From Phyllobates terribilis (lineage: Eukaryota), in NCBI RefSeq assembly GCF_046119375.1, contig NW_027362772.1:54312001-54376000 (forward strand): DNA of 64,000 bases, given 5' to 3'. Of this stretch, positions 3,971 through 63,970 are shown piece after piece. Positions within the stretch are counted from its first letter, which is position 1. Each line of letters starts with the position of its first letter. Below the pieces are notes generated by a model. It worked only from the letters and a program-made list of their open reading frames with translations. It did not search any database and was not told the origin of the DNA. The position numbers and the translations under genes were made by a program.

Positions 3971-5797
<1,827 letters not shown>

Positions 5798-32338: not shown

Positions 32339-32454
32339 TATTGCAGAGCAGAGATCCGCCGGCTCCCTGCACTGCAATACACACTGCAGGCCAGTTATAG
32401 AGGATGACCCCACACATCTTTTTAAAATGTGCTGGAGAATATGCTGCCTATGGG

Positions 32455-32990: not shown

Positions 32991-33019
32991 GATTATTACA
33001 GGAAGCAACCAAGACGAAG

Positions 33020-39748: not shown

Positions 39749-40395
39749 CTGCCAAGTTCTTTAGATGTAGTTTCTATTTTGGCCTTCAACGATGGCGCAT
39801 CCAATTTGTATGGCTCGAAACCAGACATCAGGAAAAGCGGTAGAGCTTCCTTCTTTGCCACGTCATTAAATGGCAAGAGGGCGACCTTGCGCAATGCCGA
39901 CAACACTTCTACCCTGGAGTACTCTTCTTTCATCCTCCTCTTTAGGGTATGCATATCACAGTCCACCTTGGTGCGCACTAAGCAGAGTCTTTTAGACTGA
40001 GAAAGGGCACTGAGAGCCAAGTCAACATGGGCTTGCGTGAACTGAGCATCCGTGACCAAAAGCAGAAGGTCGGCCTCGGTTATCCACTTCTCGGGAGATC
40101 CATCTTCTAGCGGGAGCTCCCAGAAGGTTAGACCGGGGTGGGAAGGGTGAAGGTACAGCAATGGGCCATCAGGCTTATTAGGATGGAGAAATGCTGCTCT
40201 CGAATTTTGGCCATTCTCGTTGAAGCCAAGAAGGGCCTGTATCAAAACTGTTTTACCAACACCTGGTCCTCCTGCAACAGCCACGGAAAAGTCCCAACAG
40301 TCTTCAAGGGGGGGATCCTCATGGTGTCCTTCATTTTCATCTTCCAGTGGCTTGAATTCAACCTCCTTCAGACTTAGCTCACTGAATGTTTCCAT
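39749..40395 (-). CDS. irgq: IRGQ first coding exon: N-terminal GTPase-like domain
   Basis: Acceptor ctattgcag| 3 nt before the ATG; G1 GGPGVGKT; PGLTFWEL..W..EADLLLLV (recalled human IRGQ PGLFLGEL..WAAEANVLVLV); G4 TKVD; donor AG|GTGGGT. Spliced length 1761 nt = 586 aa. Confidence 0.82.
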
Positions 40396-40829
40396 AACCT
40401 GCAATAGATGGAAAATTACAAATGATGGAGAATTAGGGCCCGAGTGCAGTCCGATGTTTCCCATAGACTCATTGACTTGCACGGCCGAATGCCATCCAAA
40501 TATCGGATCAACCTCGGACATGCAATGATTTGTCAGACGAACCCTAGACTAACATTTGTTCGAGTGCGATCCAATGTTTTGTCGGATCTGAAAATACACT
40601 CGCATGCACCTGCTCTTAAAGGGGTATTCTGGTCAAAGCAAGTTATCGCCAACCAACTGGATTGGTGATATCAGCTAGATTGGTGTGCGTACAACCACTG
40701 GGAACTCCACTGATTCCATCAGTTCTCCTCTGATCTTATGATGAGGGGAGAACTGATGGGATCAGTGGAAGTCACTGCGGCCAGGAGGGGGTTGAACCCC
40801 AAGCTTGGACAACCCCTTTAAGAGGTGCA

Positions 40830-41880
40830 CATCTCTTAATTAATATGGTGCATTTTACTCCAGCGACATATCACACAGAGGGTAAACAGACCCTATTTAA
40901 GTGGTTTATATGTAAAACTACTATAGTTGACCTGTGTTGTTCCAATATATGAAAGGGTTACCAATTGGAGCCCCCCTCCCCAAACAAACAGCTGCAGATA
41001 TTCAATCTTTTCATATGCACATGCTTTCCTATCTATATCATGGCTGCAGCCCACGATTCTATGTAGCGATTTATGTATTTCTCTATTTCATTTTCTTTCT
41101 AACAGATGCCACTAAAGATACTAAAAAACACACATGTATATCTCTCCCCCAACCAGTTTCGCCTATACAGGCTTCCTCAGGGGGCTAGAGCTGCAGCCAT
41201 GATATAAGATAGGAAAGCATGTGCATATGAAAAGATTGAATATCTGTAGCTGTTTGTGTGGTGGGGGGGCTCCAATTGGGGTAACCCTTTCATATATTGG
41301 AACAATACAGGTTCACTATAGTAGTTTTAAGTATAGACCACTTTTTTATAATAATCAATAAGGTGCGTTTTTTCAGAGTTTTTTGATGCTTTTTTATGCA
41401 AATTTTCAGCTGTGTTTTACAGTACCAGCAAAGTCTATGAGATTCCAGAAATCTCATGCACACATCTTGGGTTTGTTTGTTTTTTAATAAGGATTTTGTG
41501 CTTTGCATGTTTTTTTGGAAAATAGAGCATGTCACTTCTTTCAGCGTTTTTTCACCCGTTGGAAGTAATGGGTGATGAAAAAAAAAAAACACACCAAAAA
41601 CGCAAGTGTCTATTTTTTCAGTGTTTTTTGTGCCAAAACCAAAATGAGATTTTTTTTTTTTTTTTTCACTGACCTTTATGTACATGTATAAAGAGACAAA
41701 AAGGACAGTGAAAAAAATGCACCAAAAAACAAAGCAAAAAAGCAAGAAAAATCCTGAACAAACCTCCTACCAAGAGATCAGGATTTGCTGCAGAAAGAAA
41801 AACGCTGAAAAAATGCAATGTGTAAACATAGCCTAAAAGTCATATTTTAGTGCATCCCTTAAATAGTCTGTTTACCCTCT
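40830..41880. repeat. Fold-back element with ~130-bp inverted arms, interrupted by a probable Harbinger-type MITE
   Basis: 40915-41050 is the reverse complement of 41190-41330; outer cagagggtaaacagac / gtctgtttaccctctg. Confidence 0.7.
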
Positions 41881-42131
41881 GGGTAATAAGTTGTTCGGAA
41901 TACCTCATCCCTAAAGGGGTGCTCACACATTGTGTATGCTTACTCCAGCACACTCTTCATCTAAGGCTAGTTTCACACGTCCGGATATTTCCGGTACCGG
42001 AAAAACCAGTACCGGAGATATCCGTGTCCCGTGTGTGTTTTACGTGTTGCATCTGTCAGTGAATATGAATAGCGGTACCAGAGCGCCAATAACAGGGCAA
42101 AAATATTAAAAGGACTGATTTATTAATACAC

Positions 42132-42173
42132 ACACAACGCGTTTCGGTGGACACAGCCACCTTCATCAGGTGT
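42132..42173 (-). ncRNA. Minimal type I hammerhead ribozyme (mirror copy)
   Basis: Exact reverse complement of the plus-strand copy, produced by the palindrome. Confidence 0.7.
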
Positions 42174-42174
42174 G

Positions 42175-42216
42175 ACACCTGATGAAGGTGGCTGTGTCCA
42201 CCGAAACGCGTTGTGT
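42175..42216 (+). ncRNA. Minimal type I hammerhead ribozyme
   Basis: ACAC-CUGAUGA-A-GGUGG(cugugu)CCACC-GAAAC(GC)GU-U-GUGU: conserved core, 5-bp stem II, palindromic stem III, 4-bp stem I. Confidence 0.7.
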
Positions 42217-42924
42217 GTGTATTAATAAATCAGTCCTTTTAATATTTTTGCCCTGTTATTGGCGCTCTGGTACCGCTATTCATATTCACTGACTGTCCTT
42301 TTTCCCCCTGTTGGGGTGCGGTAGAGCTGCCTTTAATCTATTGTTTTTTCACCTGTGGGAGCAATTTAATTAAAATTACTACCCTGGTTTTCCAAGCTGC
42401 GCTGCCTTAACCCCTCCGGAACGCTGCCGGGGGTGTTGGTGAAGCTGGGCGTCTATCTCCGCATTACATGCTACTAACCTGACCACGTGATATACCACCA
42501 AGAGATCAGGATCTGTGAACGCCGCTGGAAATAGATGACAGCCACCAACAGAGCGGAGCTTGTGGAGCTTTACACTGGGGTTGTGCAGAGGTGCACAACT
42601 TCATAAGGTTAGTAGCCATCCCCACACCCCTCTACAAATTGCAATACTGAGTCACCCATTGCGCCTTGTTCTCTCCTCTCTTTACGTGTTGCATCTGGCA
42701 CCTGGGAATCAGCGCTACAGGTAACGCTGTTCCCAAGCGCCAGTGCTGAAAGCTGCCCTCATCATGGTTCCTTGCCGGCGCTGCGATCAGCACAAGCAAG
42801 GACAATGATGAGAGTAGTGGTAGTCTGATCCTGGTGTCCCAACCTGTAAAAATAATAATAAAATAATAATACCTGTGGCGCTGGTTCCCATGCGCCGATC
42901 CGTATCACACTGATGTCATCTGTG

Positions 42925-44136
42925 TGTAGCACCCTGAGGATTCGGCTGCTACAGGAGTATTGCACCTCAACCCAGAGGTGTGATATTCCACTCCCGGGTA
43001 AGGAAGGAGTGTGGAACTGAGCTCAGATAGACTGCATGCACTACATACATCCCATTCCAGAGGAGCAGGCCGACGGCACTCCCACTTAGAAATGTGCAGG
43101 TGCGACCGAGCCTGTTCCTGGCTGGAGTGGGAGGGGGGAGGAACATCCCATGTAGTGTAGGGGCAGATAGGGGGAGCAGTCTGGGTAGTGGTAGGAGCTC
43201 ATTGGGTGCTGGTCACCTGAGCTCACACATAGAGGGCTATATAAGGTGGGCACCATCAAAGATCAGGGTCAGACGCAGAGAGGAAGTCAGATGCAGAGGA
43301 CAAGCCTGCAGCAAGAGAGAGAGAAAGAAACAACAGCCCTGGAGAGAGAGTGGAGTGCAGAAAGACCCAGAGGGGGACAAAGAAGGGACCCAAGAACCCA
43401 AATAAGAACACCGGGTGAGGAGTCAGCAGAAGGGTACCGGAACCCAAGCTGGTGGGGGTAAAGACATTCCCCAGCCAGAGACCGGAGACCGTGGGCAGAG
43501 TCTGTCACGGTCACCCACTACATTCACCCTGAAGGCACACCACATGGAGGGTCAGGGAACCTGAGGCCAAAGGTTGCCCAACAGAAGGCCCGAGGGAGCT
43601 GGATTTAGGTGAATCACTGGTGGGGACGGCTGAAGGAAGGACAGAGGGAGAGCTCAGGGCCACGCTCCGGACTTGTTTGGGGGTTGGCCGGATCCAGGAC
43701 CTGGTGGACGCAGCACGGCTCGGGAGGTCACTTGGAGCTAGAGTGACCAGGAACATCTGCAGTAAGTAAAGACCCTTAACTGCACTACCCGAGTCTGTAA
43801 TCATTACCGGCTGCACCGCACCACCACAACCCCCATCCTCTGCGCCTGTCCCCTCTGAGGCTATACCCCTCCCGTTGGGGGTTATCCCATCAAGCTGCGC
43901 ATCCACCATCAGCCTCAGCGGACCCTGCAGCAGCGGCGGCCACAGTGACCGCATCACAACGGGTGGCGTAGTCGACACAACGAACTTTAATAACATCAGT
44001 AAGGACTGCCACATAACACTGAGCTTGACGCCCTGGGCACGGGACCGGGTCACAGCCGCTCGGAGACTACAACCCCCCATCTGATCCGGTGCCGGGTATT
44101 CCCCTCACAAAGGAATATGTCCCAGGGGGCGCGTCA
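42925..44136 (+). repeat. 5' LTR (1212 bp)
   Basis: Direct repeat of 46723-47934; all ORF-track translations in the two copies are identical; TATA-like CTATATAAG near 43237. Confidence 0.97.
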
Positions 44137-46225
44137 ACTTTGGCGTAGTCGGCAGGATTACGTGCCCGCAACACCCGGGTACTGCGTGCCTGAAGAAAAG
44201 AGCAAGTTTACCTTAGAAAGAAGACTCCTGCCGGTTCCGGAGGGTCCACGCCATCGGACTCCATCACCAGTCGTTTCCCGCCGATTGTCCGCCATTTCCA
44301 GCTTGTTCCCGCCATCTGCCGAGTTTCCCGCCACTGGGCGACGATTCCCGCCAAAACCGCAGATTTCCCGCCTTGGAAGAGCAGCGGACGCCATTATGGG
44401 CGTGCCAAAGGAGGGCAAGAGGCCACATCCCATCGTGGGCCGGGACAGAAAATGGCGCCAAAAGTGGAAACCGCCCCCACCAACAGAGACTGTGATGCTG
44501 GAGGTGTCTGTCAGCGTGAAAGAACTACCCCTGGAGCTGACAGTCACCGAGTTGCCCCGGGACCGCCCTCGAAGTGGGAGGAGACGAAAGAAAAGAGCAA
44601 AGATGGGTGTCGCTTGGAGCAGTCTGGAGCGAGCGCACCCGGAGGCAAGAGGTCTAACAAGGAGTAGCGGAGAAGCTCACCCGGAGATGGAAAGAAAGCA
44701 GAACAGCACCGGCCCGCTGGCCAGGAGTCTGCTAGAGACCGAGGAAGGAGGGCAGAGCAGCACCGGCCCGCTGGCCAGGAGCCTGCCGGAAGCAGAGCAG
44801 AGCAGCACCGACCCGATGGTCAGGAGCCTGCTGGAGTCAACAACCCCGCTAGGCTTAGCGGAGATCCTGGCGCAGCTTCCCCGAGATCGGGAGTGCGCGC
44901 GGAGTGCCCTGGAGGGCCTCGCGGGAAGGATGGCCCGAGTGCAGAGGGAGATCCTGGCGGAGTGGGGCCGGGAGATGGCCCAGCAAGCTGGAACCCGTCC
45001 ACTTAACCCGCTCCCTTGGAAGAAGACATCGACTGCCTCTGCGGATGACGCGGGAGGACCCAAGGCCGGAGACGGCGCAGAAGAGGGAGCGAGACGCATG
45101 GCAGCAGGTAAGGGGGATGCCTATACCCCATACCGGAAGACCGCTTACCTGCCCCAGCTCCCCGTCGCAGAGCCCGAAGGTCCCCCGGCCGTACCCGAGA
45201 CCGCCATGACATCGCCGCCGACTAGGCCCCGACCGGAAGCCGCCGTCGCGACCCCGATGACGTCACGCATCGTGACCCGGAGCGTGGCGCCGGAAGAGGA
45301 GCCTCCGGCCTGGTCACAGGGCCTAGCATTTCCGGGCGCCGCATCCAAAGCAGAGCCATCTACCTCCGCGGAGCCTCCGGCCTGGTCGCAAGGCCAGGTA
45401 ACCCAGGGCGCCGCCGTCCTAACGGTGCCCTTCACCTTCCAGGTGCCCCAGGCCTGGCCGCAAGGCCTGGGCAACCCGGGCGCCATCACCACCGCGCCCG
45501 CGCCCGTAATACCAAGGGTGCCACACCTGGGGGAGGACCTCTTCGGCCAGCTCACATGGCCGGACGGGCGGCCCTTCATCTGGCCCGAAGGGTACCCTGA
45601 GCTAGAGCGGCAGCAAAGACTAGGGCCCTTGTGTGAGCCCCTGATCCCGGCTCCAAAGCCCGTGACTCGGGTCTCGCCTCCACTCGAGGAAGCCCAGTTC
45701 GTGTGGGACCCCACGGGAGAAGATTTGATGGGGTTCACCGGAGAGACTCGGGCAGCTGCAGCAGAGCGTACCGAGTGTTGCCGTCAACAGCTGGCAGAGT
45801 TCAAGAGAGAGCGGGAGGAGAGGCGGGCCAGAGAGCAATGGGCCCGGACCCGCAGCGCGGAGCAAAAGAGCCGGACCAGAAGGGACCCCCGTGCAGCAGA
45901 TCGTCCCCGTACCATCGGGACGGTAATAAAGTTTAATGCGCAGCATGGGTGGGGCTTCATAAAGGACCAGAACACCATGGGTGACGTCTTCGTTACCCGA
46001 CGGGATGTCGAGTCTCACCTGCCAGAGGGTCACAAAGGCCGTGACCTCTACGTCGGTGACGAGGTAACGTTCACCCGGCACAAGTGTGCCAAGGGACCTT
46101 ACGCCCTCCACGTGCATCGCTTGACGGAGGAGGAGTTGCGGTGCGAGGAGGAGGAGCAAGAGGACCCGGACGGGTCTGAAGAAATCACCAGCCATAAGAT
46201 AAGAGCAGGAGGCAGACGCCGTTGA
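44117..46225 (+). CDS. 702-aa intact ORF (alternative start 44396): basic patch, helical segment, Pro/Ala repeats, coiled coil, C-terminal cold-shock domain
   Basis: CSD at ~45911-46122: GTVIKFNAQHGWGFI (RNP1-like), DVFV (RNP2-like), GDEVTF..HKCAKGPYALHV; high GC content and no stops over 2.1 kb. Confidence 0.85.
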   Translation: MSQGARQLWRSRQDYVPATPGYCVPEEKSKFTLERRLLPVPEGPRHRTPSPVVSRRLSAISSLFPPSAEFPATGRRFPPKPQISRLGRAADAIMGVPKEGKRPHPIVGRDRKWRQKWKPPPPTETVMLEVSVSVKELPLELTVTELPRDRPRSGRRRKKRAKMGVAWSSLERAHPEARGLTRSSGEAHPEMERKQNSTGPLARSLLETEEGGQSSTGPLARSLPEAEQSSTDPMVRSLLESTTPLGLAEILAQLPRDRECARSALEGLAGRMARVQREILAEWGREMAQQAGTRPLNPLPWKKTSTASADDAGGPKAGDGAEEGARRMAAGKGDAYTPYRKTAYLPQLPVAEPEGPPAVPETAMTSPPTRPRPEAAVATPMTSRIVTRSVAPEEEPPAWSQGLAFPGAASKAEPSTSAEPPAWSQGQVTQGAAVLTVPFTFQVPQAWPQGLGNPGAITTAPAPVIPRVPHLGEDLFGQLTWPDGRPFIWPEGYPELERQQRLGPLCEPLIPAPKPVTRVSPPLEEAQFVWDPTGEDLMGFTGETRAAAAERTECCRQQLAEFKREREERRAREQWARTRSAEQKSRTRRDPRAADRPRTIGTVIKFNAQHGWGFIKDQNTMGDVFVTRRDVESHLPEGHKGRDLYVGDEVTFTRHKCAKGPYALHVHRLTEEELRCEEEEQEDPDGSEEITSHKIRAGGRRR
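44141..44159 (+). promoter_or_regulatory. Primer-binding site complementary to the tRNA-Ser 3' end
   Basis: TGGCGTAGTCGGCAGGATT is the reverse complement of ...AATCCTGCCGACTACG-CCA, the vertebrate tRNA-Ser(AGA-type) 3' end as recalled; it starts 4 nt after the LTR. Confidence 0.88.
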
Positions 46226-46713
46226 GTGCGGCAGAGCAGGAGGCTGTATATAGTTGCCTGTCGGGGCACAGTGAATCGGAACTGAAACTGAAACTGGAAC
46301 TGTTGTTGCTGCTAAAATAGTCCCCGTTGGGACCAGCGAACTGTTACCTGTAACCCTTTCCATACCAGGCTGAGGACTGTGAGCAGCCATCCCTTTCCCT
46401 TTACCTGGCCGGGGACTGAGAACGGCCAAAATTCCCTGTACATAGTTGCGCTTGCTAAAGCGCCCCCTACCGGTTTTATAGGAAAAACCATTTTTCTAAA
46501 AGACTGTCGCACTCTACCTGGTCACGAGTTGCACGGTGACCAGAGGAACAGAAGAGAGAAAGAGACGACGAGAATGTTGTTTACCTGAAAAAGTTTATAT
46601 ATATATTTATATAGTATTTCGTATAATATTTAATATGTTTTACATGTTTATAAAATGTTGTATGTTTTGGTGTTTTTTTGTCTTTGCAGCCCGAGGACGT
46701 GCTGTGATTTACC

Positions 46714-46722
46714 AGGGGGGAA
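46714..46722 (+). promoter_or_regulatory. Polypurine tract
   Basis: AGGGGGGAA directly abuts the 3' LTR. Confidence 0.8.
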
Positions 46723-47934
46723 TGTAGCACCCTGAGGATTCGGCTGCTACAGGAGTATTGCACCTCAACCCAGAGGTGTGATATTCCACTCCCGGGTAAG
46801 GAAGGAGTGTGGAACTGAGCTCAGATAGACTGCATGCACTACATACATCCCATTCCAGAGGAGCAGGCCGACGGCACTCCCACTTAGAAATGTGCAGGTG
46901 CGACCGAGCCTGTTCCTGGCTGGAGTGGGAGGGGGGAGGAACATCCCATGTAGTGTAGGGGCAGATAGGGGGAGCAGTCTGGGTAGTGGTAGGAGCTCAT
47001 TGGGTGCTGGTCACCTGAGCTCACACATAGAGGGCTATATAAGGTGGGCACCATCAAAGATCAGGGTCAGACGCAGAGAGGAAGTCAGATGCAGAGGACA
47101 AGCCTGCAGCAAGAGAGAGAGAAAGAAACAACAGCCCTGGAGAGAGAGTGGAGTGCAGAAAGACCCAGAGGGGGACAAAGAAGGGACCCAAGAACCCAAA
47201 TAAGAACACCGGGTGAGGAGTCAGCAGAAGGGTACCGGAACCCAAGCTGGTGGGGGTAAAGACATTCCCCAGCCAGAGACCGGAGACCGTGGGCAGAGTC
47301 TGTCACGGTCACCCACTACATTCACCCTGAAGGCACACCACATGGAGGGTCAGGGAACCTGAGGCCAAAGGTTGCCCAACAGAAGGCCCGAGGGAGCTGG
47401 ATTTAGGTGAATCACTGGTGGGGACGGCTGAAGGAAGGACAGAGGGAGAGCTCAGGGCCACGCTCCGGACTTGTTTGGGGGTTGGCCGGATCCAGGACCT
47501 GGTGGACGCAGCACGGCTCGGGAGGTCACTTGGAGCTAGAGTGACCAGGAACATCTGCAGTAAGTAAAGACCCTTAACTGCACTACCCGAGTCTGTAATC
47601 ATTACCGGCTGCACCGCACCACCACAACCCCCATCCTCTGCGCCTGTCCCCTCTGAGGCTATACCCCTCCCGTTGGGGGTTATCCCATCAAGCTGCGCAT
47701 CCACCATCAGCCTCAGCGGACCCTGCAGCAGCGGCGGCCACAGTGACCGCATCACAACGGGTGGCGTAGTCGACACAACGAACTTTAATAACATCAGTAA
47801 GGACTGCCACATAACACTGAGCTTGACGCCCTGGGCACGGGACCGGGTCACAGCCGCTCGGAGACTACAACCCCCCATCTGATCCGGTGCCGGGTATTCC
47901 CCTCACAAAGGAATATGTCCCAGGGGGCGCGTCA
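46723..47934 (+). repeat. 3' LTR (1212 bp)
   Basis: Offset 3798 from the 5' LTR; followed by the TSD TGTG. Confidence 0.97.
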
Positions 47935-48075
47935 TGTGCGTGTTCAGTGTGAGACACTTTTGCGGACCGTGCATCCGCAAAAAAACGGACATTCTACACG
48001 TGTCAGTGTCTCCGGTACATGTGGAAACCGTCACCACTCGTACCGAAGGTACTTACGTGTCAAAGAGCCCTTAAT

Positions 48076-48307
48076 CAGTGTTTCGCAATCTCCAGTCCTC
48101 AGGGCCCCCAACAGATCATGTTTTCAGGATTTCCCCATATTGGACAGGTGAGAGAACCCGTGGCTTCTTTGTATTAGTATACTAAGATTTACAAAGGTGA
48201 TGGAATTATTATCAAGGCATCAAAAATTGCCACAGGTTCTCTCACCTGTCCAATCCTGAAAACATGATCTGTTGGGGGCCGTGAGGACTGGAGATTGCGA
48301 AACACTG
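48076..48307. mobile_element. hAT-type MITE with long inverted arms
   Basis: CAGTGTTTCGCAATCTCCAGTCCTCA / TGAGGACTGGAGATTGCGAAACACTG; right flank ATCTAGAT. Confidence 0.8.
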
Positions 48308-48813
48308 ATCTAGATGTCCCCAACTATATCCTTCCAGAGAATGCCCCCGTGAACTCAAAGTTTACATATATTTTGCCCCTTTCAACCAAGAAACCCCAGA
48401 AAATCCACGACAGTTGGCAACTATAGAAATTGCGGTCCTTCTACAGACTACATTTCACAGACTTGTGAGCCCGGACTCATTTAGGGGAAACACAACTCCC
48501 CAGCTGTTATCAACCACAGTTCAGATCATGCCCCGGCAGCTATAGGATGCTAGGTGTTGTAATCCTTCAACAACTGAAGGGCCAGAGGCTATTAGAGCAT
48601 GCTGGGTCCAGCAGCTGGAGGGTCACAGATTGGTGCAACCAAAAAGGAGTAAGGGGCCACTTCTACCTCCAAAGTAGGTGGAATTGTGCCTTTTGATGAG
48701 CTATTGGACTGCAAAGGGCCCATATATTGTTCTTGCACAGGGGTCCTTTTCTGTCTATGTCCACCAGTGCAATCAGTACAACAGGGAATATACAGAGAGG
48801 CGGCAGACTATTA

Positions 48814-49134
48814 GGCCGTGTTCACACATAGCGTAAACGCTGCATTTATTAGTTCCAGCACGGAAACTCCTGCAGACTGTGCGTATAAAGCAGCCATTGA
48901 ACTGTGTTTTTTGCTACATTTTTTCCCATTATTGCTGAAAAAAAGCATATAAAAAACACAGCTACTTAAAGTGCAGAATCGAATATTTTCTGTCCTAAAA
49001 AAAACAACTTTTTTTAAACGCATCAAATAAAGAGGAAAACGCTTATAAAAATGCCGCAAAACCAGAGATTGTTTTTGAGTAATTTGGTGCAAAATCAAAA
49101 AACAGTCGAAAAAAAAATGCATGTGAACACAGCC
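48814..49134. mobile_element. Harbinger-type MITE
   Basis: TTA TSD; TIR GGCCGTGTTCACAC / ATGTGAACACAGCC. Confidence 0.75.
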
Positions 49135-50013
49135 TTAAGGGAATAATCCAAACCTAGGGATAGGAAAGGAGGCAGGGCAGGGATTAGGAGGGGGATGGGA
49201 AGAAATGGTAACCTGATTACAATAGGAGGGTGGAAGGAAACAATGTCTTTCTGTAAATATTTACAAGTGTGGTTACAATGTATCACAGCGGGGGACATCA
49301 GACAAGCTTGGCATGCAGGGGGAGATGTGGGGATGGGGTTGGGGTCTCACTGGTTTCAGGTGCAGCAGATCTCCTGGTGGAAGGAGACGGCCAGTGGATG
49401 TCAGGGCCTGGCCTTCCTCTATCAGCAGCTGATCCAGGGTGTATATATGTATCTCTCCTCCTCCTTCCTCTCACATGTCCCTGTTTTCCTTCCTCCCCTC
49501 TGCAGTGACGCTGCTATATCCCCTCCCTGCCCAGAGCTGTATACAGCACAGCGGCCTGACAGCAGTCACCTGCTACTCCCCCTGTCTATTGTACAGCAGG
49601 CAAGTATATATTTATGCATCCTTTCGGCCTACCCTTCTGCCCGCCATCCTGACCCTTTGTCTGTAATGCTGCCCCTTTGTTGTGGAACCCCATTGTTGTC
49701 TCGTATTATTGTCACCTTTCCATTTTGCTATGGCCTAGAAGAGTAACTGGCAGTGATGCCCGGGGGTACAAACTTATGATAGGATAGCCTGAATTTAACC
49801 CTGTGCTAAGGCACTTTGCAAGGGCTGAGGGCATATTTACAGAAAGTGGAGAAGGGCCACTTTGGCCGCAGCAGCTGTCCTCTCCCCGTGACTCCCGCCG
49901 ACCACTTTATCACAAGTCCTTATAAATCTTTCATGTGATGCTATTTTGGAGATATGTACGTCAATGCTTTCTCATCGCGCTCCATTGTACATTTTCCATT
50001 CTCCGTTTTAGAC

Positions 50014-50678
50014 ATGGCCGACGCTGAGATACCTGAAGATGTGGCATCTGGACCACCTGCCCCTGAGACACCAACTCCAGAGACACCACCACCACCTCCA
50101 GAATCTCTACACTTCACCATTGCCATCATCGGACCAAGAGGTTCTGGAAAGACCACACTAGTCCGATCTCTTTGTAACCACACGGAACAATTTGGTCCTG
50201 GTTTCCTAGACTCCTACTTTAGGGATGAGGGTGGAGAACATGGGGTTGACCGGCACACTTATCCACCTTTACCTAATGTTACTCTCCTTGATTGCCCGGG
50301 GTATAAACCCAGTGACTCTGCTACAGTATATATTGACAGCATCAAGCCTGACACGGTGCACTGCCTGGTGGTAACATTTCGGGAGACGATCACTGACGCA
50401 GACCTGCAGATACTAGCAGCCATAAAACATTTAGGGAAACCCGTCTGTATGGTGCAAACACATATAGACCTTACTATGCACACGGAAAAGAGACAGCAGG
50501 GGAAGGGTTACTGGAGAGGGCAAACATTGATGGGCATGAGGGGTAAAGCGCAGGAACAGCTGGGTGGGCATGGGATGCCAGGGTCCGGTATATTTCTGGT
50601 GTCTGGTCTAGAACCCCAAAACTACGACTTCCAAGGAATGGTGGATCATATCGAGAAGGAGATTCTGCAATGGAAGAG
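50014..50678 (+). CDS. IRGQ-like tandem GTPase gene, coding exon 1 (IRG-type G domain)
   Basis: Acceptor ctccgttttag| 2 nt before the ATG; G1 GPRGSGKT, G3 LLDCPG, G4-like THID, G5-like FLVSG, then YDF; donor AG|GTAAGA (phase 2). Confidence 0.82.
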
Positions 50679-51845
50679 GTAAGAGATGACCATCGATGAG
50701 ACCCATTAACCCTTTCTAAATTGAAGCTGTGATCCAGATATATGTTGTTTGAGGAGTTGACCATGTAATTCATGGACCACCACGGCCGATCCTGAGTCGG
50801 GGTCTACCTCTATCATATCCATATGCCCTGCTTGAAATTTGGGCATGCAGAGATGCTGGGACTTAAATTAAAGGTACATTATTAATGTATTCCCCCTAAA
50901 GTGTCTGTATTTTAACATTCCCTTTAGGGTTAGGGTTAGGTTTAGGGTTAGAGTTAGTGTACGTCATCACTTTATGGAGCGTGCAAAGGAGCTGAACTCA
51001 CTCCATACAGCAGGGGTGCCGGCACTGAAGAGTGACTCCGATCTTGCATCAATTTACATCTTCCCACTATGGTGTCTGTATTTTAACATTCCCTTTAGGG
51101 TTAGGGGTAGAGTTAGTTTACGCCAGAAATGCGCCATCATTTTATGGAGCGGGCACAGGAGCTGAACTTACTCCATACAGCAGGGGTGCCGGCTGTGTTA
51201 TACATCTGGCACCGAAGAGTGACTCAGATCGCGTCACTTTAACCTTTTAGATACCGCTGTCAATTGTCGGAATGGGAGGGGGATGCAAACGGCTCCAAAG
51301 CTCATCGCCTCTGGTGTGTGACTTGATCGCTGGATTGGCATGGGTCTGCTAAATGCCCCCCCCCCCATGTCGTCGCTATCTTGGTACTCCTGGGCTTCAT
51401 AGGAGACAATGATTTTTCACTGTATACTGCCATACTGAAGTATCATAGTGTAAAGAGCAAGCGACCAAACAGTTCCTAGGTGGACTAAAAAATGCAATGT
51501 AAAGCAAAGAAAGTTAGAAAAAAAATATATACATAGAAAAATTGAATCCCCTCTTTTTCAAACAAACAAAAAATTTGATATTACCGTTTCCATAAAAAAT
51601 GACTGCTTTCTCCTAGTAATAGCGTCACACCTATTCATAGATTGTGAGTAGTATTGCACAATAGGACATCAATTTTGAGGGGCAAAAATGAGGGAAGTCT
51701 TGTTTGACTTTACATTAATATGAATTACCGATTGGACACCAATCCAATCTCCTGTCGTCCAATCCACACCTCTTTATAAAATGCATGCGGATAAAGCGCC
51801 AATGAGAACCCGGCCTTAAAGTAATTTTTCTACTTTTGTTTGCAG

Positions 51846-52890
51846 GCCCATCCCTTTTACCACTGAACCTCACTGTCAAGAACTGGTGTCGGTGTTTGAG
51901 GTCCAATGTGACCAAGAAGGACTTTCAGAGTTCTGCTCTCTCCTCAGCATCTTCTTAGATAACCCTCCGCCTGTGTCCGCCGTTGTGGGTGTGACGGGCA
52001 GCGATAAAGAAGCGACGGTCTCTGCTCTCTGTGAGCCCCCACTTTCTGGTCTTGTAGTGAAGCCACTCCCTGGGCCTGGGACACCCCCAATGTCCGTGGA
52101 GCAGTACTTGCAGAACTTGCAGTCGGAGGCCTGTGATGTCTACCTGATTTTGGGTTCGGGGATGGACAACAGCTCCCGCGCTATACTGGTTGAAGCCTTG
52201 GTGGCAGCTGGCAAACACTGTATGCTGATCGGCGGGGAGGGAGATAGGAAACACAAACATGATGTCAATGGGCAAGAGGGGGGCAGTAAAAAGTGCCATG
52301 CTGGCACTGACCTACCAGGACTGAGGGTAGCGTTAGAGAAGGGGGCTCCACAGTTGGTGAGAGAAAGGCTCCTTCATGCCATCCCCACCATCATTGTCCA
52401 GCTGGTAAGAAGAGAGCGGAGAAGACTTATGACGGGCATATATGATATCTGTTTGGATGTATGTGCCAAGTCAAGTCAAGGGCATTTGCAGGACGCCCTG
52501 GCCACCCTTTCCTCTAAGTTGTTGTCGTTCCGCGCCCGTTTTGGTTTGGATGAAGATTCGCTGATGCTAATATCACAAGTGACAGGGTGCAGTCCTGAGG
52601 ACTTGCGTGCTGAGATTCAGTGCCCCCTGGCACAAGACCCAAGTGAAGACCAACTGCTTCAACTAACATCACAACCACTTTCTCTGACCGAGCTCGTCTG
52701 GAGTTACGTGCCCCGCTGGGGCGGAGGAGAAGAAGCTTCCTCTAAACTGTCTGCAGACCGTACTTACCGTCTACTGGTGGAAGCTGTATGGGGCATGGCG
52801 GAGGATGCGGAGAGGGTACTGCTGCATGGCTGTACCAATCAAAAGGTGGCAAAAGAAAGGACTGCCTTCTGCCACTGGCCTTGTGTGTGA
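51846..52890 (+). CDS. IRGQ-like tandem GTPase gene, coding exon 2 (degenerate second IRG domain plus helical C-terminus)
   Basis: Acceptor tacttttgtttgcag| in frame with exon 1 (1710 nt total = 569 aa); VGVTG, PGPGTP, FGLDEDSL, LRAEIQCPL and MAEDAERV are IRG C-terminal motifs; AATAAA near 53022. Confidence 0.82.
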
Positions 52891-55800
52891 TGTATCTAGA
52901 GCTGTGGCCCCCTAAATCTATATTTATGCTTTGATGTATCTCTATCTGGGTGGCATCGCCTTTAAATCTCGTAAGAGCAAAACATACCAGAGCAACAATC
53001 TAGTATTAGCATAGACGAGGAATAAACCAATATAGTGCACTGTCCGTTGTGAGGTTCCTCCTTCTGTCGCTTGCCCTGCAGTATACCCGGCCATTAGCCG
53101 TTTCTGATATCTAATGTATTGTACATGCATGGAGTTTCTTCTGCGCACATGCCAATGTCATACCTGGGTGTTGTGTAATAAAGCGGTAGTGTGTATGCCA
53201 AGCTCCACGTCATCGTAGAAGCATGAATGATATGATAATAGGATGGCGAATCAGCAGTGTCCTGTAGGTCGGCACTACGCTCATGTAAGGGGATCCCCTA
53301 ATTCCTATATCTCAAGAAACCTGTTTGGTGCCTGAAGACCACGTAGGAGAAAATCCACCCAATATGCCGTCTTGTAGTACTGATGTGCCACTCATATGAG
53401 CAAAAAGATTCACCTTACCCTTGCTGGACCTTCTTTGCCCGGCACTCGAATGCCGGCATCTTGGCCACCTCTTGCAATTACTAGGTTCCCTCAACTTTCA
53501 TGATCTAATGAGGGCTTAGTAATTGCAAGAGGTGCCCAGAATGCCAGGATTCGAAAGCCGGGCAAGGAAGTTTGCACTGCCACAGGGCACAGAAGTGAAT
53601 GCCGGACAAGGGTAGGCGCATCTTTTTGCTCTACTCTATCCATAATATTGTTATGGTATTAATGTGGGATGCAGTAGAGTTTTCTGCCCAGTAGTAGTGC
53701 CCGCAAACTTCTGCATAGTCGTAGAGTAGCAATTTTGGGGCCTTGAGTTTAACTAGGGCCGATGGGAGCGACCAGTGTCCTCCTGATAAGAGTGTTGCAA
53801 CATGGTAGTGCCCATATAGAAAAAGCAGCACTACAGGCGCAGCTTCCACATAATTGTGCATGACGGTAGTATTACGATAGAATTGTTGTTGACTCCGTGA
53901 GGCCAATATGCACAGTACTAATGCCCACACAGTTAATTACGCTGTTAGTAGTAAACTAGGATGGATTTGCATGATCGTGCATAGTAGTACCATCATGGCT
54001 GAAATGATGGCACCACATCTTTCCGCTTCTCCTACTTTTCTTCTCTAAAAAACATGGCCGCCCCCATTTGGCTTATAGATATGCTGCAACGGGACGACTC
54101 AGAAATGAATTGCACTCATTTTTCGGGCAGTCTAATGTACGTATTCCTCCGGTAGACGAGCAGCAGAACGACAACTTGTTTGCACTGATTGATTGTAATT
54201 TGCATGGTGCGATAGTAAATGGCTGCAATTTGCATCTGTGCATTAGCGCTATGACTGCTGTAGTTTCTATCAGCTCATCAGAATAACGATTTCTCAACAG
54301 TTGCTTGAAAAAATAAAAATAAAAAAAAAAGCATGTTATAACAGCGTGTCGTCCGGAACGCTCACAACAGGTGTGAACAGGTGTGAGCTCTTATCCATAT
54401 GTCTGATTACCATCTTGTGTCTTGTTTTGATGATTTGGCTAATAAACGGGCTGTTGTCGCACCAGTCCTCATCGTGTTCATTTACGTTCTGCGCGGCTGG
54501 GACACGCGGGTGTTGTTCCGGTGATCGCACCTGTCATTGTTATGCAGCGTATACATTTCTACCCAGCGCTGCAGAATACGCTTTCCTATACCGAAGGCCA
54601 TCACAAAAATCACATCATGGCGGCCCTATGGTCATTCAGACTTTTTGATGTCTACCTAATGAGCGAAGAACTTATCTGTATCACACAGGTCCACCAAAAC
54701 CCAGTTGGCACTGCCATCAGTTTAAGGCCACCATATTTTCCGTCTGAGTGCGATCCAACAAAACATTGGATCACACTCAGACCGATGTTATTCTATGGGG
54801 TCACGCACATGTCTGATAATCAGATCAAACTCGGCCATGCTTCGATTCTTTCTTCCAAAGAATCGCAGCATGTCAGAGTTTGATCCGATTATCCATGCAA
54901 GTCAATGAGTGCATGGGAAACATTGGCACTTGGATGTCATCTAAGTGTGGTTTGATTTCCGAGCACTGAAACAATGAAGAAGATGGAGAAATTATGCTCT
55001 CCATCTTCTCCACAGTGTGCTCCAATTCTCTCATCCTAGAGAATCGGATCGCGCTATGCCGACACTCAGATCAGAGTATCATTTGCATAATCGGCCCAAT
55101 TTTCTCGGATTATCAAGGCAGACAACTCCCCTAATGTGCGCCCCTACAAGTCGCCCCATCTTCTTCTGGTTTCTCCTACACTGACTGTTTCATGCACATG
55201 GCTCGACTAAGAATCTATACTGCTTAGCAATAGAAATGAGCAGACTCGAACTTTAAAATTCGGGGTTCGTACCACACACTTAGCGTCTGTTGCTGAACCC
55301 TGAACACGGACTTCTCCCGGAAGTCTGTTTTAATGTGAGTTTCGAGGGAAGGTCGGAAAGAGACTGAGAATTTTCCAGCTCCGAAATCCGGGTCCCCATT
55401 CATTTCAATGGAGTTTCGGTTCATGTTCAAGTTCGGGTAACGTTCTTTAGCCAAACCGAACTTTGGACATAAAGATCAGGCAGGTGCCAGAACCCAGGGC
55501 CGACGTCAGCACCCGGGCAAGTGCCAGGGTCCTGGACCATCAGGAGGGGCCCACTCTCCGTCGAGGCCCGGACCGCTTCCCCGGCATCTGTGCAGGACCG
55601 CTGGCGCTGTTTGATTGCCGACACTTCACCAGACATGGCCGCGCGCTGTGCGGCTGTGTCTGCTAGTAATGACACGGCAGGGGCGACACTGCGCCTTTAA
55701 CTTGTGTGTTGCCCCTGCCGTGTCATTACTTAAAGTTTGACATGATAAATTAGCCATAAACTTCTGGATAATGAAAAAGATTTTCAAAAATATGCATCAA

Positions 55801-56700: not shown

Positions 56701-57865
56701 GGTCATGTGACCAGGGTGGTGGGAGATGGTGGGCTGTGACGTGGGACACCGGGGACTGGTGGGGGGCGAGCTGTGCTTAGCTATGTGCCTTAGAGGACGG
56801 AGACCACCCAGTCACGTGATGTCTGCAATCAGGACACTGTGCAGATACACAGAGGAGCCTCCCATTCACTTCAATGGGGAGTGACCAGGCTTAAAGGGAT
56901 TGTCCAGGATTTGTGGGGGAGGGGAGCAGTTTCACTGGTGAGTATTTTATTTATTTATTTTTCATTTTTTTTATTTTATTTTATTTCTTTTTAAATTGCA
57001 TTTTAATGCTGTTATTTTTGGGATTTGGGGCTTTTTAAAAGATCTATCAGTCCAATTTATATTTGCCTTTTTTGTGTGTCCCCCCCCCCCCCATTTTTCA
57101 TTTGCGCCTTTTTTTATTTAATTTTTTTATTTTGCAATTTTTTATTTTAATTTTACTTTTTATTTTGCAACTTTTTTATTTTATTTTTTTTATTTTGCAA
57201 CTTTTTTATTTTATTTTTTTATTTTGCAACTTTTTTTTTTTTTATTTGTCAAGTTGTGTTTTTTTTTTTTTTTTGTTTTTTTTAATGTTTGTCACATAGG
57301 GCAGTGTTTTCTATCCAGACGATTCCTCAACTTTTTTAAAAAGTCGCATAATTTTTGGCACAAATGCCCCCCCCCCCCCCCCTCCCCCTCCCGGGTTATT
57401 TTATGCACATCTGTCTAAATTTTTTTGCACATATTTTGCTCTAAAAAGGCACAAAAAAGGGATAAAAAACAGAAAAATAGTAGAATTGAATTCAAGAATC
57501 ACATGTGCCGTTTTGACAAATTTGGAGCAAAAAAAGTCAACGAGGACATGATTAAAAAGGAAAAAATATATAAAACAAATCACAAATGATGACTTAAGCC
57601 ACTGGTGTTAATGGTATTACAACCTCTAAATAAAATATCGGTCACCGTTCATTAATTCCATCCGACCGGGATCGGAGAAAAATGATGATCCTGGTCGTAT
57701 TAAACCCTTTATGGTGCCGCAGTCAGTGGTTTTCGTGCCATCTAAGTGGTTAGATAGAGGGAGAGGCTCCCTCAGTTATTGCATCCGCTCGCGCGCCATC
57801 CTGGACTCCTAGATCTTGCCAGTTGCGGACAGTGTGTGCAAGCGCCATAGAAAAGAGCTTGTAAG

Positions 57866-58354
57866 TAGTGATAAGCGAACCTGAACTTAAAAACAAGTCC
57901 GTTGCGATGTCCGGAGTCCCGGGGGAAGTCCGTTGCGATGTCCGGAGTCCCGGGGGAAGTCCGTTGCGATGTCCGGGGTCCCGGGGGAAGTCCGTTGCGA
58001 TGTCCGGGGTCCCGGGGGAAGTCCGTTGCGATGTCCAGGGTCCCGGGGGAAGTCCGTTGCGATGTCCGGGGTCCCGAGGGAAGTCCGTTGCGATGTCCGG
58101 GGTCCCGGGGGAAGTCCGTTGCGATATCCGGGGTCCCGGGGGAAGTCCGTTGCGATGTCCGGGGTCCCGGGGGAAGTCCGTTGCGATGTCCGGGGTCCCG
58201 GGGGAAGTCCCTTGCAGAGAGAGAGAGAGAGAGATTTTTTTTTTCCAGATCAAAAGTTCAGGTACCCAATATTTTGAATGGGTTTCAAGTTCGGGTGCAG
58301 TTCTGGTATCTGAATCGAACTTTGGAATAACTTCCACGGGTCCGCTCATCCCTA
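57866..58354. mobile_element. hAT MITE carrying a 31-bp minisatellite (~10 copies)
   Basis: TIR TAGTGATAAGCGAACC / GGGTCCGCTCATCCCTA; perfect 8-bp TSD CTTGTAAG; unit ggggaagtccgttgcgatgtccggggtcccg. Confidence 0.9.
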
Positions 58355-60969
58355 CTTGTAAGCCCTAGGAGACCTCAGAGGTGGTTTGTAACCTAGGCAA
58401 CGAGCTGTAAACTGTAGAAGGAAAAATCCCTCCATTCTTGAGTACCTAGGAAAGGATTTTTAATAAGAGATAAATTACAAAATTGTTTGATTTGTTTATT
58501 CTACAAGCACTTTGCAATTTTAGCCATATAAGAGGTCAAGACGACCCCTTTAAATTCCATGAGCTGTAGAAAATGTCAAAAAAACTCCAGTGACCACAAT
58601 GGTCTTTAATGGCACCTGCAGCCTATCTACAATGTGAAGACCCCCAAACAAAAAGCACCCCGCGTCTCAGTGTTACATTGGGGGGGCGGGCTGGTATATG
58701 TCAGCCCGAGGCTTCATATTGTATACTTTATAAATGGGAACATTTAGGGTCCTCTTCTGCCGTCGCCGCTCGTCTAGGGATCAGTCTTGTAACCTATAGA
58801 GGAAAGTCATGGACTTGCTTGACTGCTACATATTAAACACTCAACTGCAAAGACTTTGGGAAGTAAGACCCCAATTTAGCAAGGCTGGCTTTTGAAGATC
58901 GCACGGGTTGGAACAGTATGCCCCAAATTCGTTGTGTTTTTTTTTTAATGAATTTGGTGCATCTTTTTATTTTCCTTGCTCCACCGCAAAAAAATGTACG
59001 CTGGTCGGTGACTGGAGTAATTTATGATACTTTTGTGGCATAAATTATGATGAATTTTTCGGGCACATATCCTCTCGGCTGATTTTTTTGGAAAACTGGA
59101 GAATTGGCCCTGACTGGCATAAAAAAATGTAAAAAAAAACGCCAAAAGTTTCACAAAAACTTTGCAAGTTTTCAAACAGTTCTACTCCTGATTTCTACAG
59201 AAGGATAAACCATGGAGGATGGATCTTTAACTGCGCTGCCAGAGACACCATATGATGAGAAAGGAGATCCAGGAGTCAGTATTGAAAATGGCGATTTTAT
59301 TAGTCAACTTGTATCAACGTTCACAGGCTTCTTCATCAGGACAGATTGTGAATTCTGGCGCAAAAACTGATGAATCGAGGCCTAAATAACCTAAGTATGA
59401 ATGGACCCATTTGGCTCACAGATATTCCTCTCCATCCCATACACATGTACACTCTTGTCTCAACTGAATGTGCATGTGCTTTCAACAGTGAGAAACCTCT
59501 TGCAGAAGCTAAAGGATCGGGCCCATTGGAACCCAACATGACTGACCCTTTTCGACGACATCTGCGACCCTACCATACATATAAAATGCGTGTCTGGTCC
59601 TGCCGAAATGAGTGGGTTTTGTACATGTTGGGTATGACTGTCGTCATACTGATCTGAAGAATTATTTTTCCGGGTCATTTTTACGAAACAATGAACACTG
59701 TAAAAAAAAAAAAAAAAAAAAAAAAAATCAATGGCAGAATAGATGTTTTTTTCTACAATTTTGCCACATAAAATTTTTCAGTCCATTACAGGATCAAATG
59801 AATGGTCATTCGAAATTAGGACTCCTGCAAAAAAACCAAAACAAGCCCCTCAACATGGATGGAAAAATAAAAAAAAGGGTCATGATTTTTGGAAGAAGAA
59901 GAAAATTGAAAATGCAAAAATTAAAAGTCAACGGGTCCTTTTGGGTTTAGAAGGGTTATTACCATCAACCCAATGTTTGTAAGAAGAGCAGGACGAGAGC
60001 GCCGTTGGCTTAAACAGAGGCTTCAACTAAGGGCCCCTTGAATATCGCAGCACGTTCACGGCCGGCATTTGTATTCACGTTTAGCCGCCTCCATATATTT
60101 TTCTAGAAAGTCGGAGTCTCGCTGTCGTCAGTGAGATGAGATTATTTCCTTTCCCGGGCCGCGCACAATATACGCTCCTAATTTGTGCACAGAACGTGTC
60201 CCGTCTGTAGACGCGCAGTAAAACTTGTCGTCTGCACCGTATCAGAAGAGGTGATTTAAGCTGCTCCCTTCCACGGAGGGGAAATTTTGTAACATCTAGT
60301 CGGCCATCGAGCAACTGGAAATTTGCAATTTTTCTTTTGCCGTCTGCTGTATTTATAGAGAGAGTTCACGACTAATAAGTCCGTAGAGCTCACGTGACCA
60401 TGAAGAGCTGATTACTGAGCAGTAATGGGGACCTGTCAACTCTCCTGCCATTCCTGTTTCAATAAATACTATTACTCCCCCTGAATTTTATCTGAGTTAA
60501 TGGATTTGAATAGATCGGAGCTAAATTAAAAAAAAAAAACATACACCTTCCCGCAATTTGATATAGCAGAGGTGGAGGGTGCACTTACTTTACTGCCACT
60601 TTGTCCATGCAAAGTAAGACACAGCTACACTTAAACTACAATTGACAGGATCGGAGAAATCGTTGATCCAGTAGTTAAGTCTCTCATTAAAGGGCGGACC
60701 ACCTTGTGGCTGTGATTACTGGTAGATGGCACAAAACGTGATTGGCTGCAGCGTTGATATGTCAAGGCTGCAGCTTGTATACAAAAACCAGGACAGCAGC
60801 AGAGAGGCAGAGCTGCACCTGGGTAAGGTAAGTAACGGCTCTTTTTATTATTTTAAGCCTGCGGATCGAGTAAAGAAAATACTTCCAAGAAAACCTAGAA
60901 TTGTTGCGTTAACGCAAATATAACTTTTTGAAGGGTGAGATGAAAAATGGACAAGTTTTGAGAATTTAA

Positions 60970-62089: not shown

Positions 62090-62265
62090 ACTTATATGAC
62101 ACTGTAAATTTCCACAGCGCTTTACAGACATCATCATCACTTTCCATTGGAGCTCACAATCTAAATTTTCCAACAGAACATACAAACGTCTTTGTGGGTT
62201 TTGAACCCAGGACTCCAGGGCTACAAGGCCACAGTACTAACCACTGAGGCACCATGTTGTCCATT
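62090..62265 (-). mobile_element. tRNA-derived SINE with L2-like tail
   Basis: The minus strand has A-box-like GCCTCAGTGGTTAG and B-box-like GGGTTCAAAACCC, and a 3' TGTAAAGCGCTGTGGAA..TATA..AAATAAA. Confidence 0.65.
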
Positions 62266-62274
62266 AGTTATTAT

Positions 62275-63970
62275 ACAGTACTACAATACTACCCCCATTG
62301 TACAAGAATATAACTACTATAATACTACCCCCATTGTACAAGAATATAACTACTATAATACTGCCCCTATGTACGAGAATATAACTACTATAATACTGCC
62401 CCCTATGTACAAGAATATAACTACTCTAATACTGCCCCCTATGTACAAGAATATAATTACTATAATACTGCTCCCTATGTACAAGAATATAGCTATTATA
62501 ATACTGCCCCCTATGTACAAGGAATATAGCTACTATAATACTGCCCCTATGTACAAGAATATAGCTACTATAATACTGCCCCCTATGTACAAGAATATAA
62601 CTACTATAATACTGCCCCTATGTACAAGAATATAGCTACTATAATACTGCCCCTATGTACAAGAATATAACTACTATAATACTGCCCCTATGTACAAGAA
62701 TATAACTACTATAATACTGCCCCTATGTACAAGAATATAACTACTATAATACTGACCCTATGTACAAGAATATAACTACTATAATACTACCCACTATGTA
62801 CAAGAATATAACTACTATAATACTGCCCATATGTACAAGAATATAACTACTATAATACTGCTCCCTATGTACAAGAATATAACTACTATAATACTGCTTC
62901 TATGTACTAGAATATAACTACTATAATACTGCTCCTATGTACAAGAATATAACTACTATAATACAGCTCCTATGTACAGGAATATAACTACTATAATACT
63001 GCTCCTATGTACAAGAATATAACTACTATAATACTGCCCCTATGTACAAGAATATAACTATTATAATACTGCTCCTATGTACAAGAATATAACTATTATA
63101 ATACTGCTCCTATGTACAAGAATATAACTACTATAATACTGCTTCTATGTACAAGAATATAACTACTATAATACTGCCCCTATGTACAAGAATATAACTA
63201 CTATAATACTGCTCCTATGTACAAGAATATAACTACTATAATACTGCCCCCTATGTACAAGAATATAACTACTATATTACTGCTTCTATGTACAAGAATA
63301 TAACTACTATAATACTGCCCCTATGTACAATAATATAACTACTATAATACTGCTCCTATGTACAAGAATATAACTACTATAATACTGCTCCTATGTACAA
63401 GAATATAACTACTATAATACTGCCCCTATGTACAAGAATATAACTACTATAATACTGCCCCTATGTACAAGAATATAACTACTATAATACTGCCCCTATG
63501 TACAAGAATATAACTACTATAATACTGCTCCTATGTACAAGAATATAACTACTATAATACTGCTCCTATGTACAAGAATATAACTACTATAATACTGCTC
63601 CTATGTACAAGAATATAACTACTATAATACTGCCCCTATGCACAAGAATATAACTACTATAATACTGCTCCTATGTACAAGAATATAACTACTATAATAC
63701 TGCCCCCTATGTACAAGAATATAACTACTATATTACTGCTTCTATGTACAAGAATATAACTACTATAATACTGCCCCTATGTACAATAATATAACTACTA
63801 TAATACTGCTCCTATGTACAAGAATATAACTACTATAATACTGCTCCTATGTACAAGAATATAACTACTATAATACTGCCCCCTATGTACAAGAATATAA
63901 CTACTATATTACTGCTTCTATGTACAAGAATATAACTACTATAATACTGCTCCCTATGTACAATTATATA
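62275..63970. repeat. ~38-39 bp tandem satellite (CTATGTACAAGAATATAACTACTATAATACTGC[T/C]C), ~1.7 kb
   Basis: More than 40 visible tandem units. Confidence 0.97.

Follow-up and report, generated by a model that had tools for sequence, protein, structure and literature searches.

We describe here a pair of head-to-head IRG-family genes in a 64,000-nucleotide stretch of the genome of the frog Phyllobates terribilis (contig NW_027362772.1, positions 54,312,001 to 54,376,000; hereafter the window). The focus is the gene on the plus strand, which we call gene B; its neighbour on the minus strand is irgq. Gene B encodes a product of 569 amino acids from two coding exons, and coordinates for both genes are given in Table 1. 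The second exon of gene B encodes a complete but degenerate IRG unit, made up of N-terminal helices, a reduced G-like domain, and a C-terminal helical domain, followed by a tail with Cys and His residues. An acceptor (TTTTAG/AC) sits 2 nucleotides ahead of the ATG at 50014, and the intron between the coding exons (donor AG/GTAAGA, acceptor TTTGCAG/G) splits an Arg codon in phase 2. The acceptor TTGCAG/GTT lies directly ahead of the irgq ATG. Domain 1 of irgq has the motifs GGPGVGKT, WELP, and TKVD, and domain 2 is without a P-loop in both genes (GVTGSDKE in gene B and GGNPGFRH in irgq). A preliminary description of this DNA had listed the splice acceptors, the phase-2 AG/GT donors in Arg codons, the two-exon layouts, and the G1, G3, and G4 motifs, all of which are present in the window sequence. 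The phase-2 Arg-codon intron that it took to be common to the two genes is indeed found in both.

Each of the four exon products from gene B and irgq matched the Pfam family IIGP (PF05049) above the gathering score, with listed E values of 8e-14 to 1.5e-34, and the matches are therefore not due to chance. For gene B, exon 1 scored 52 bits (E = 7.8e-14) and exon 2 scored 42.9 bits (E = 4.5e-11), with a cut-off of 24. These searches used the gene B exons separately, and full-length analyses used a database orthologue (P0001). Exon 1 aligns with the G domain of Irgb10 (residues 68-247), and exon 2 aligns with Irgb10 residues 44-357 in three pieces. The family matches, together with layout and orientation, bear out the earlier suggestion of a second tandem-domain, IRGQ-like gene running divergently from irgq.

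Two Logan cDNA contigs from a related frog, L001 (SRR5149407) and L002 (SRR5149420), follow gene B from 50010 to 50679 and then pass straight to 51844-53206/53214, with about 82 per cent nucleotide and 92-93 per cent amino acid identity. These spliced cDNAs cross the 50678/51846 junction that the preliminary description had put forward for checking and confirm it in the orthologue. The irgq junction is confirmed by a third cDNA from a related frog (L009), which passes from 39749 to 38430 in the alignment (39749/38427 in the gene model). L002 also joins a short upstream exon to the acceptor just ahead of the gene B ATG, an intron that L001 retains. The first 20 nucleotides of L002 match 49581-49599 with four mismatches, followed in the window by GCAAGT. 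This is the best match on the plus strand of 40001-50020, and by our own estimate about 0.004 such matches are expected by chance. From this we infer a candidate 5' non-coding exon about 410 nucleotides upstream.

Compared with the two gene B cDNAs by the Nei-Gojobori method, exon 1 has a ratio of non-synonymous to synonymous substitution (dN/dS) of 0.13 and exon 2 one of 0.06, at a dS of about 0.6. Full-length orthologues (552-580 amino acids) turned up in every major anuran lineage when exon 2 was used in a word-based search. They come from Bombina, Discoglossus, Xenopus, Rhinophrynus, Pelobates, Pelodytes, and many neobatrachians, with the closest (96 per cent identical) in Anomaloglossus. 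Spliced transcripts of the gene occur in several RNA assemblies. The AlphaFold2 model of P0001, a 96 per cent identical orthologue, had a predicted local distance difference test score (pLDDT) of 80.8 and a predicted template modelling score (pTM) of 0.78. Its best matches in the PDB were Irga6, Irgb6, Irgb10, and GM4951 (Z scores of 18.5-20.8), and within it residues 30-219 adopt the full fold of a small GTPase (Z about 16, root-mean-square deviation about 2.8). This model and the alignment of exon 2 with Irgb10 both support the IRG fold, in which a G domain is combined with an N- and C-terminal helical domain. Given the orthologues, the cDNAs, the dN/dS values, and the fold of P0001, gene B is a real and functional gene of two coding exons that is expressed in relatives and strongly constrained.

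Table 1. Features of gene B and irgq, in positions of the window.
Feature	Position	Strand	Remarks
Candidate 5' non-coding exon end, gene B	49581-49599	+	donor CAGCAG/GCAAGT (GC-AG type); inferred from the L002 leader
Gene B coding exon 1	50014-50678	+	221 codons + 2 nucleotides; Pro-rich N-terminus, then stand-alone Ras-like G domain
G1 / P-loop GPRGSGKT	50131-50154	+	residues 40-47, domain 1; read from sequence
G3 DCPG	50290-50301	+	residues 93-96, domain 1
G4 variant THID	50458-50469	+	residues 149-152, domain 1; TKxD in canonical IRGs
Gene B intron	50679-51845	+	1167 nucleotides, GT...AG; skipped by cDNA contigs L001 and L002
Gene B coding exon 2	51846-52890	+	in frame; stop TGA at 52888-52890
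Degenerate P-loop position GVTGSDKE	51988-52011	+	domain 2; sequence and Irgb10 alignment
Frog-specific CHWPCV tail	52870-52887	+	C-terminal; orthologue alignment
Gene B 3' untranslated region, at least to 53214	52891-53214	+	cDNA contigs L001 and L002
irgq coding exon 1	39749-40395	-	N-terminal G domain; ATG at 40395; donor AG/GT, phase 2
irgq coding exon 2	37314-38427	-	LIR1 motif YEVIG at residues 9-13

A profile search of 1.84 billion representatives (a library clustered at 50 per cent), together with name look-ups, identified close full-length relatives of gene B in a newt (Lissotriton), a lungfish (Protopterus), the tuatara (Sphenodon), four lizards, Alligator, and Crocodylus. In a careful maximum-likelihood (ML) tree of the C-terminal unit (C-unit), these relatives and the frog proteins form one clade, clade B, with support of 100/99. 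Gene B is the anuran orthologue of this ancient, unnamed lineage of the IRG family. IRGQ forms a separate clade in the same tree and includes the window irgq along with sequences from a caecilian, newt, lizard, alligator, and five mammals. The high-scoring representatives in the clustered library included no clade B member from a mammal, bird, turtle, or teleost. Two single-domain reptile IRGs (P0091 and P0138) fall outside clade B, and their loci are uninformative. NCBI labels gene B orthologues 'uncharacterized LOC...' or 'interferon-inducible GTPase 5-like' in many species; the gene is unnamed, and we did not find it described in the literature searched. An annotated orthologue across tetrapods, which the preliminary description had set against its own proposal, was thus found for the most part: annotation exists in many species, but under no proper name and with none found in mammals.

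The pairing with irgq extends well beyond Phyllobates. Writing Q for IRGQ and B for the clade B gene, the X. laevis locus is Q(-)/B(+), again head-to-head; that of the lizard Elgaria is Q(-) - B(+) - ZNF; and that of the alligator is uPAR/Ly6 - Q(-) - B(+) - ZNF - ZNF - Ig. The newt IRGQ and clade B proteins have consecutive accession numbers and come from one contig. In the vole, no B-like sequence was found within 10 kb of IRGQ; the next gene is 1.4 kb away, and a PINLYP-like gene lies on the other side. We infer, with good support, that clade B was lost at the IRGQ-adjacent site in the lineage leading to mammals.

These loci bear directly on the earlier proposal that an inverted duplication gave rise to an amphibian paralogue of IRGQ. 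The duplication is favoured by the N-domain tree and the intron (below), but the restriction to amphibians is not, given clade B genes in lungfish, newt, tuatara, lizards, and crocodilians and gene pairs in X. laevis, Elgaria, and alligator. A duplication of irgq confined to amphibians would explain the head-to-head arrangement and the common architecture and intron phase, and it is compatible with the monophyly test reported below. It is very improbable all the same, since lungfish, tuatara, lizards, and crocodilians each have an IRGQ of their own, either adjacent to B or elsewhere on its chromosome. It is refuted by the loci of alligator and Elgaria, and independent duplications are contradicted by the 100/99 clade.

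By its sequence, the minus-strand neighbour is a true irgq, because it groups with mammalian IRGQ, keeps the LIR1 motif, and has an N-domain that matches the N-domain structure of human IRGQ (8q6q_C, E = 2e-4). LIR1 of IRGQ lies at amino acids 186-189 (PMC13172515), and the motif ([FY]EV[IL]G) is kept in a homologous context in mammalian, alligator, newt, and frog IRGQ, including the irgq of the window. In every IRGQ examined, the very beginning of the long exon encodes LIR1; both the motif and the phase-2 Arg-codon intron, which lies 9-10 residues upstream, are conserved from frog to mammal (window irgq, alligator, vole). The 5' exon of irgq was not located, as cDNA L009 retains the upstream intron.

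Our conclusions on the G domains and the C-unit come from careful ML trees, quick trees being unreliable at deep nodes. The phase-2 intron falls at the same point after the extra G domain in the B genes of frog, Xenopus, Elgaria, and alligator, in frog and alligator Q, and in vole IRGQ, with an AG/R Arg codon at that intron in the frog, Xenopus, and Elgaria B genes. In the G-domain tree, the N-terminal domains of clade B (100/96) are placed next to those of IRGQ (97/80), and a branch with support of 95/85 sets the two apart from every canonical or last G domain. As judged from these sequences, the two sets of N-terminal domains share an origin. Clade B and IRGQ most likely arose by inverted duplication of a two-domain, two-exon ancestor, and because clade B orthologues and head-to-head pairs occur outside amphibians, that event would predate the lungfish-tetrapod split.

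The C-unit of clade B groups with a clade of ray-finned-fish proteins labelled IRGC/cinema and not with IRGQ (93/88; 95/82 for the G domain), so that both a whole-gene duplication and a chimeric origin have to be weighed. In a chimera, exon 1 and the phase-2 intron would have been copied from IRGQ onto an IRGC-like gene with a single unit, and no whole gene would have been duplicated; the two halves of B do differ in their nearest relatives, the N-domain being closest to that of IRGQ and the C-unit to the fish IRGC-labelled clade. Several results make this quite unlikely. A constrained tree uniting B and Q was 20 log-likelihood units better than the free quick tree and fell only about 5 units short of the careful one, and for the C-unit the approximately unbiased (AU) test did not reject B+Q monophyly (P = 0.795). 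Moreover, the best non-B BLAST matches of the Elgaria B C-unit are lizard IRGQ proteins, and the residues after the intron (FEV...E..E) can be aligned between B and Q.

The same grouping could also mean that clade B is the pre-mammalian form or source of IRGC. Amniote IRGC would then be B minus the exon-1 G domain, moved beyond PLAUR, and mammals would have lost no gene. Among B proteins, it is those from outside frogs whose C-unit and last G domain group with the fish sequences, and this last G domain has canonical GKS, DLPG, and [NST]KID motifs. In human and mouse, IRGC lies in close linkage with IRGQ (PMC1297648), and IRGC1 was reported not found in Xenopus (PMC9232189). However, the same report places IRGC1 in mammals and birds as well as reptiles, yet B is also present in lizards and crocodilians, and the search yielded none from birds. 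The IRGC/cinema labels of the fish proteins are automatic names, and the trees are without amniote IRGC sequences, none having been recognised by short motifs among the 239 fetched proteins. With P0091 and P0138 also outside clade B, we consider a direct link to IRGC rather unlikely.

The account that we favour, and consider probable, is that gene B is a constrained frog gene from an old clade B lineage paired with IRGQ, which arose by inverted duplication before the tetrapods and was remodelled in frogs. Beyond the position of the C-unit, several points weigh against it. The transcripts are those of a related frog (about 82 per cent nucleotide identity) and not of the source species, and the 5' exon depends on a 20-nucleotide match. 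For mammals, birds, turtles, and teleosts, the absence of clade B was judged from the 50 per cent-clustered library and one vole locus. In two frog species the G3 motif is DYQG or DYAG. Finally, the nucleotide binding, weak hydrolysis, and partnership with IRGQ proposed below are predictions throughout.

The motif history was read from two alignments of clade B orthologues, one (A1) that includes seventeen frog species and crocodile, and another (A2) that compares frogs with newt, lungfish, and amniotes. G40, G45, D93, G96, T149, and D152 are invariant in A1, and all frogs keep the P-loop Lys. The P-loop GPRGSGKT that the preliminary description had recognised in the N-terminal G domain follows the pattern GxxxxGK[ST], which is present in all seventeen frog orthologues and in newt. 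Position 150 is His in 17/17 frogs and Gly in crocodile. Lineages differ in which domain has an intact P-loop. Newt has both, with GERGVGKT in domain 1 and canonical GxxxSGKS, DLPG, and [NST]KID in domain 2. The same canonical domain 2 motifs are found in lungfish, tuatara, and Elgaria, where the P-loop Lys of domain 1 is lost and only the domain 2 P-loop is intact. Crocodilians and Anolis have neither, as domain 1 has lost the Lys and domain 2 is degenerate too. In frogs only domain 1 has an intact P-loop, and it keeps GxxxxGK[ST], DxxG, and T-H-x-D; domain 2 has lost G1, G3, and G4 along with about 25 + about 22 residues. The alignment places these frog changes on the stem lineage, where domain 2 was shortened by about 45 residues in all, N-terminal helices were lost, and a Cys/His tail was gained. 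In switch I, Irgb10 has ETT, versus no conserved Thr in frog domain 1. In the careful trees the frog stem branch is very long, at 1.37 (C-unit) and 0.98 (N-domain), after which conservation is tight.

A domain 2 that is shortened and without any GTPase motif, at the end of such a long stem branch, is also what a decaying duplicate or pseudogene might look like. We give that explanation next to no probability, as the reading frame is intact in all seventeen frog species, which span Anura, and dN/dS is lowest in the 'degenerate' exon; the spliced transcripts and the confident AlphaFold2 fold of P0001 argue in the same direction.

The frog tail (52828-52887; columns 601-632 of A1) reads ...HGC...(12 amino acids)...CHWPCV, with three Cys and two His that hardly vary among anurans. 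Newt, lungfish, and amniote orthologues have no such tail, and AlphaFold2 confidence is low in this region. The tail could be a small zinc-binding or palmitoylation motif; its sequence does not make a CaaX box.

Within the gene B intron, 50880-51240 contains two copies of a direct repeat of about 190 bp with degenerate telomere-like TTAGGG runs (approximately 50925-50955 and 51095-51115), probably a short interspersed element (SINE)-like sequence that was duplicated within the intron. The region between irgq and gene B is split by a long terminal repeat (LTR)-type insertion at 42925-47934. Identical open reading frames (ORFs) of 189 amino acids (43511-44080 and 47309-47878) lie on either side of a 702-amino-acid ORF (44117-46225) with a C-terminus that resembles a cold-shock domain. 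Without this insertion and another near 42.1 kb, only about 4-5 kb would separate the genes. Elsewhere the window is crowded with transposon remnants, including Tc1/mariner-like transposase ORFs, a hAT-like ORF pair, and reverse-transcriptase fragments (4314-4763, 18695-19099, 20592-21212, 8277-10939, 21850-23627, and 33903-35853). ORFs at 27211-27879, 32404-33221, 57750-58368, and 62192-62635 look coding but are tandem repeats (Pro/Gly-rich and PMYKNI-type units) with no stops in two or more frames or on either strand. No ZNF or PINLYP-like neighbouring gene was found within the 64-kb window.

Among known systems, IRGQ (FKSG27), a quasi-GTPase and autophagy receptor for class I major histocompatibility complex (MHC-I), is similar to B in several ways. 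Both have two coding exons with a phase-2 Arg-codon intron after an extra N-terminal G domain, both combine a G domain with an IRG unit carried on one long exon, and the genes are adjacent and divergent. In contrast to IRGQ, B is without LIR1, having FEVQC in place of [FY]EV[IL]G, and its exon 1 has no match to 8q6q at E<=1, whereas frog irgq does match. Domain 2 of B in newt, lungfish, tuatara, and Elgaria has canonical GTPase motifs, unlike IRGQ, and phylogeny puts B outside the IRGQ orthologous group, in the well-supported clade described above. IRGC (CINEMA, or interferon-inducible GTPase 5) is a single IRG unit with a canonical GKS and its coding sequence on one exon; in amniotes its gene order is PLAUR-IRGC-SMG9. 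The similarity of B to IRGC lies in the C-unit and last G domain, which are nearest to the fish proteins labelled IRGC/cinema; B differs in having two coding exons and an additional G-domain exon, and in the loss of GKS from frog domain 2.

The canonical IRG (p47) GTPases Irga6, Irgb6, Irgb10, and GM4951 share Pfam IIGP with B and include its best PDB matches (E down to 5e-12, Z about 20). Compared with them, domain 1 of B has G1 and G3 but THxD rather than TKxD at G4, and no conserved switch-I Thr. B also differs in its tandem architecture, in the degenerate domain 2 of frogs, and in having no consensus interferon-stimulated response element (ISRE) between the genes. The closest parallel in layout is with the tandem IRGs (mouse Irgb tandems and zebrafish irgg-irgq1), which likewise have two IRG-type G domains per polypeptide, one competent and one modified, an arrangement proposed to be a built-in regulatory heterodimer (PMC1297648). 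Tandem IRGs arose within particular lineages by fusion of adjacent IRG genes, complete or truncated, while B forms one conserved group of orthologues at least as old as the ancestor of lungfish and tetrapods, and the domain that bears its P-loop differs by lineage.

From the P-loop Lys and G4 Asp that are kept, domain 1 of the frog protein is predicted to bind guanine nucleotide. An altered base specificity, which had been raised in the preliminary description, is not suggested by the sequence and was set aside because the guanine-reading Asp of G4 (D152) is invariant. Hydrolysis by the frog protein would be poor, there being no conserved switch-I Thr. The sequence scan found no consensus ISRE between irgq and gene B. 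In the whole window, GAAANNGAAAS occurs only at 1969 and 46284 (inside the LTR element), which is the level expected by chance. Most IRG family members have an interferon-inducible promoter (ISRE/GAS), IRGC and IRGQ being exceptions. The lack of a consensus ISRE between the genes fits with IRGC, itself not interferon-induced (PMC1297648; PMC9232189). The frog protein may be a constitutive regulatory or scaffold pseudo-GTPase that is not induced by interferon. Its partner would plausibly be IRGQ or other IRGs, through contacts of the G domain or the helical domain, with the divergently transcribed IRGQ as the natural candidate. Bekpen et al. proposed quasi-IRGs as regulatory heterodimer partners (PMC1297648). 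As a joint mechanism, guanine-nucleotide binding by domain 1, poor hydrolysis, and a constitutive regulator or scaffold pairing with IRGQ or other IRGs is a tentative proposal with perhaps a modest chance of holding in all its parts. A bolder possibility, which we consider unlikely as it stands, is that IRGQ and clade B are an ancestral, divergently transcribed partner pair with products that heterodimerise. Mammals would have kept IRGQ only, in frogs the live nucleotide pocket of the partner would have shifted out of domain 2 into domain 1, and the frog protein would be a nucleotide-gated regulator of IRGQ-type selective autophagy.

IRGQ has recently become prominent as an autophagy receptor for MHC-I and is treated as a lone, odd pseudo-GTPase. 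The results here show that lungfish and most tetrapods other than mammals have, head-to-head with IRGQ, a conserved sister gene built in the same way, one that was lost or relocated in mammals. This is no new kind of system, and gene B is already in automatic annotations. Clade B nonetheless offers a natural system, tractable in Xenopus, for the role of the extra N-terminal G domain in IRGQ-type proteins, and it allows us to ask whether IRGQ originally had a working partner.

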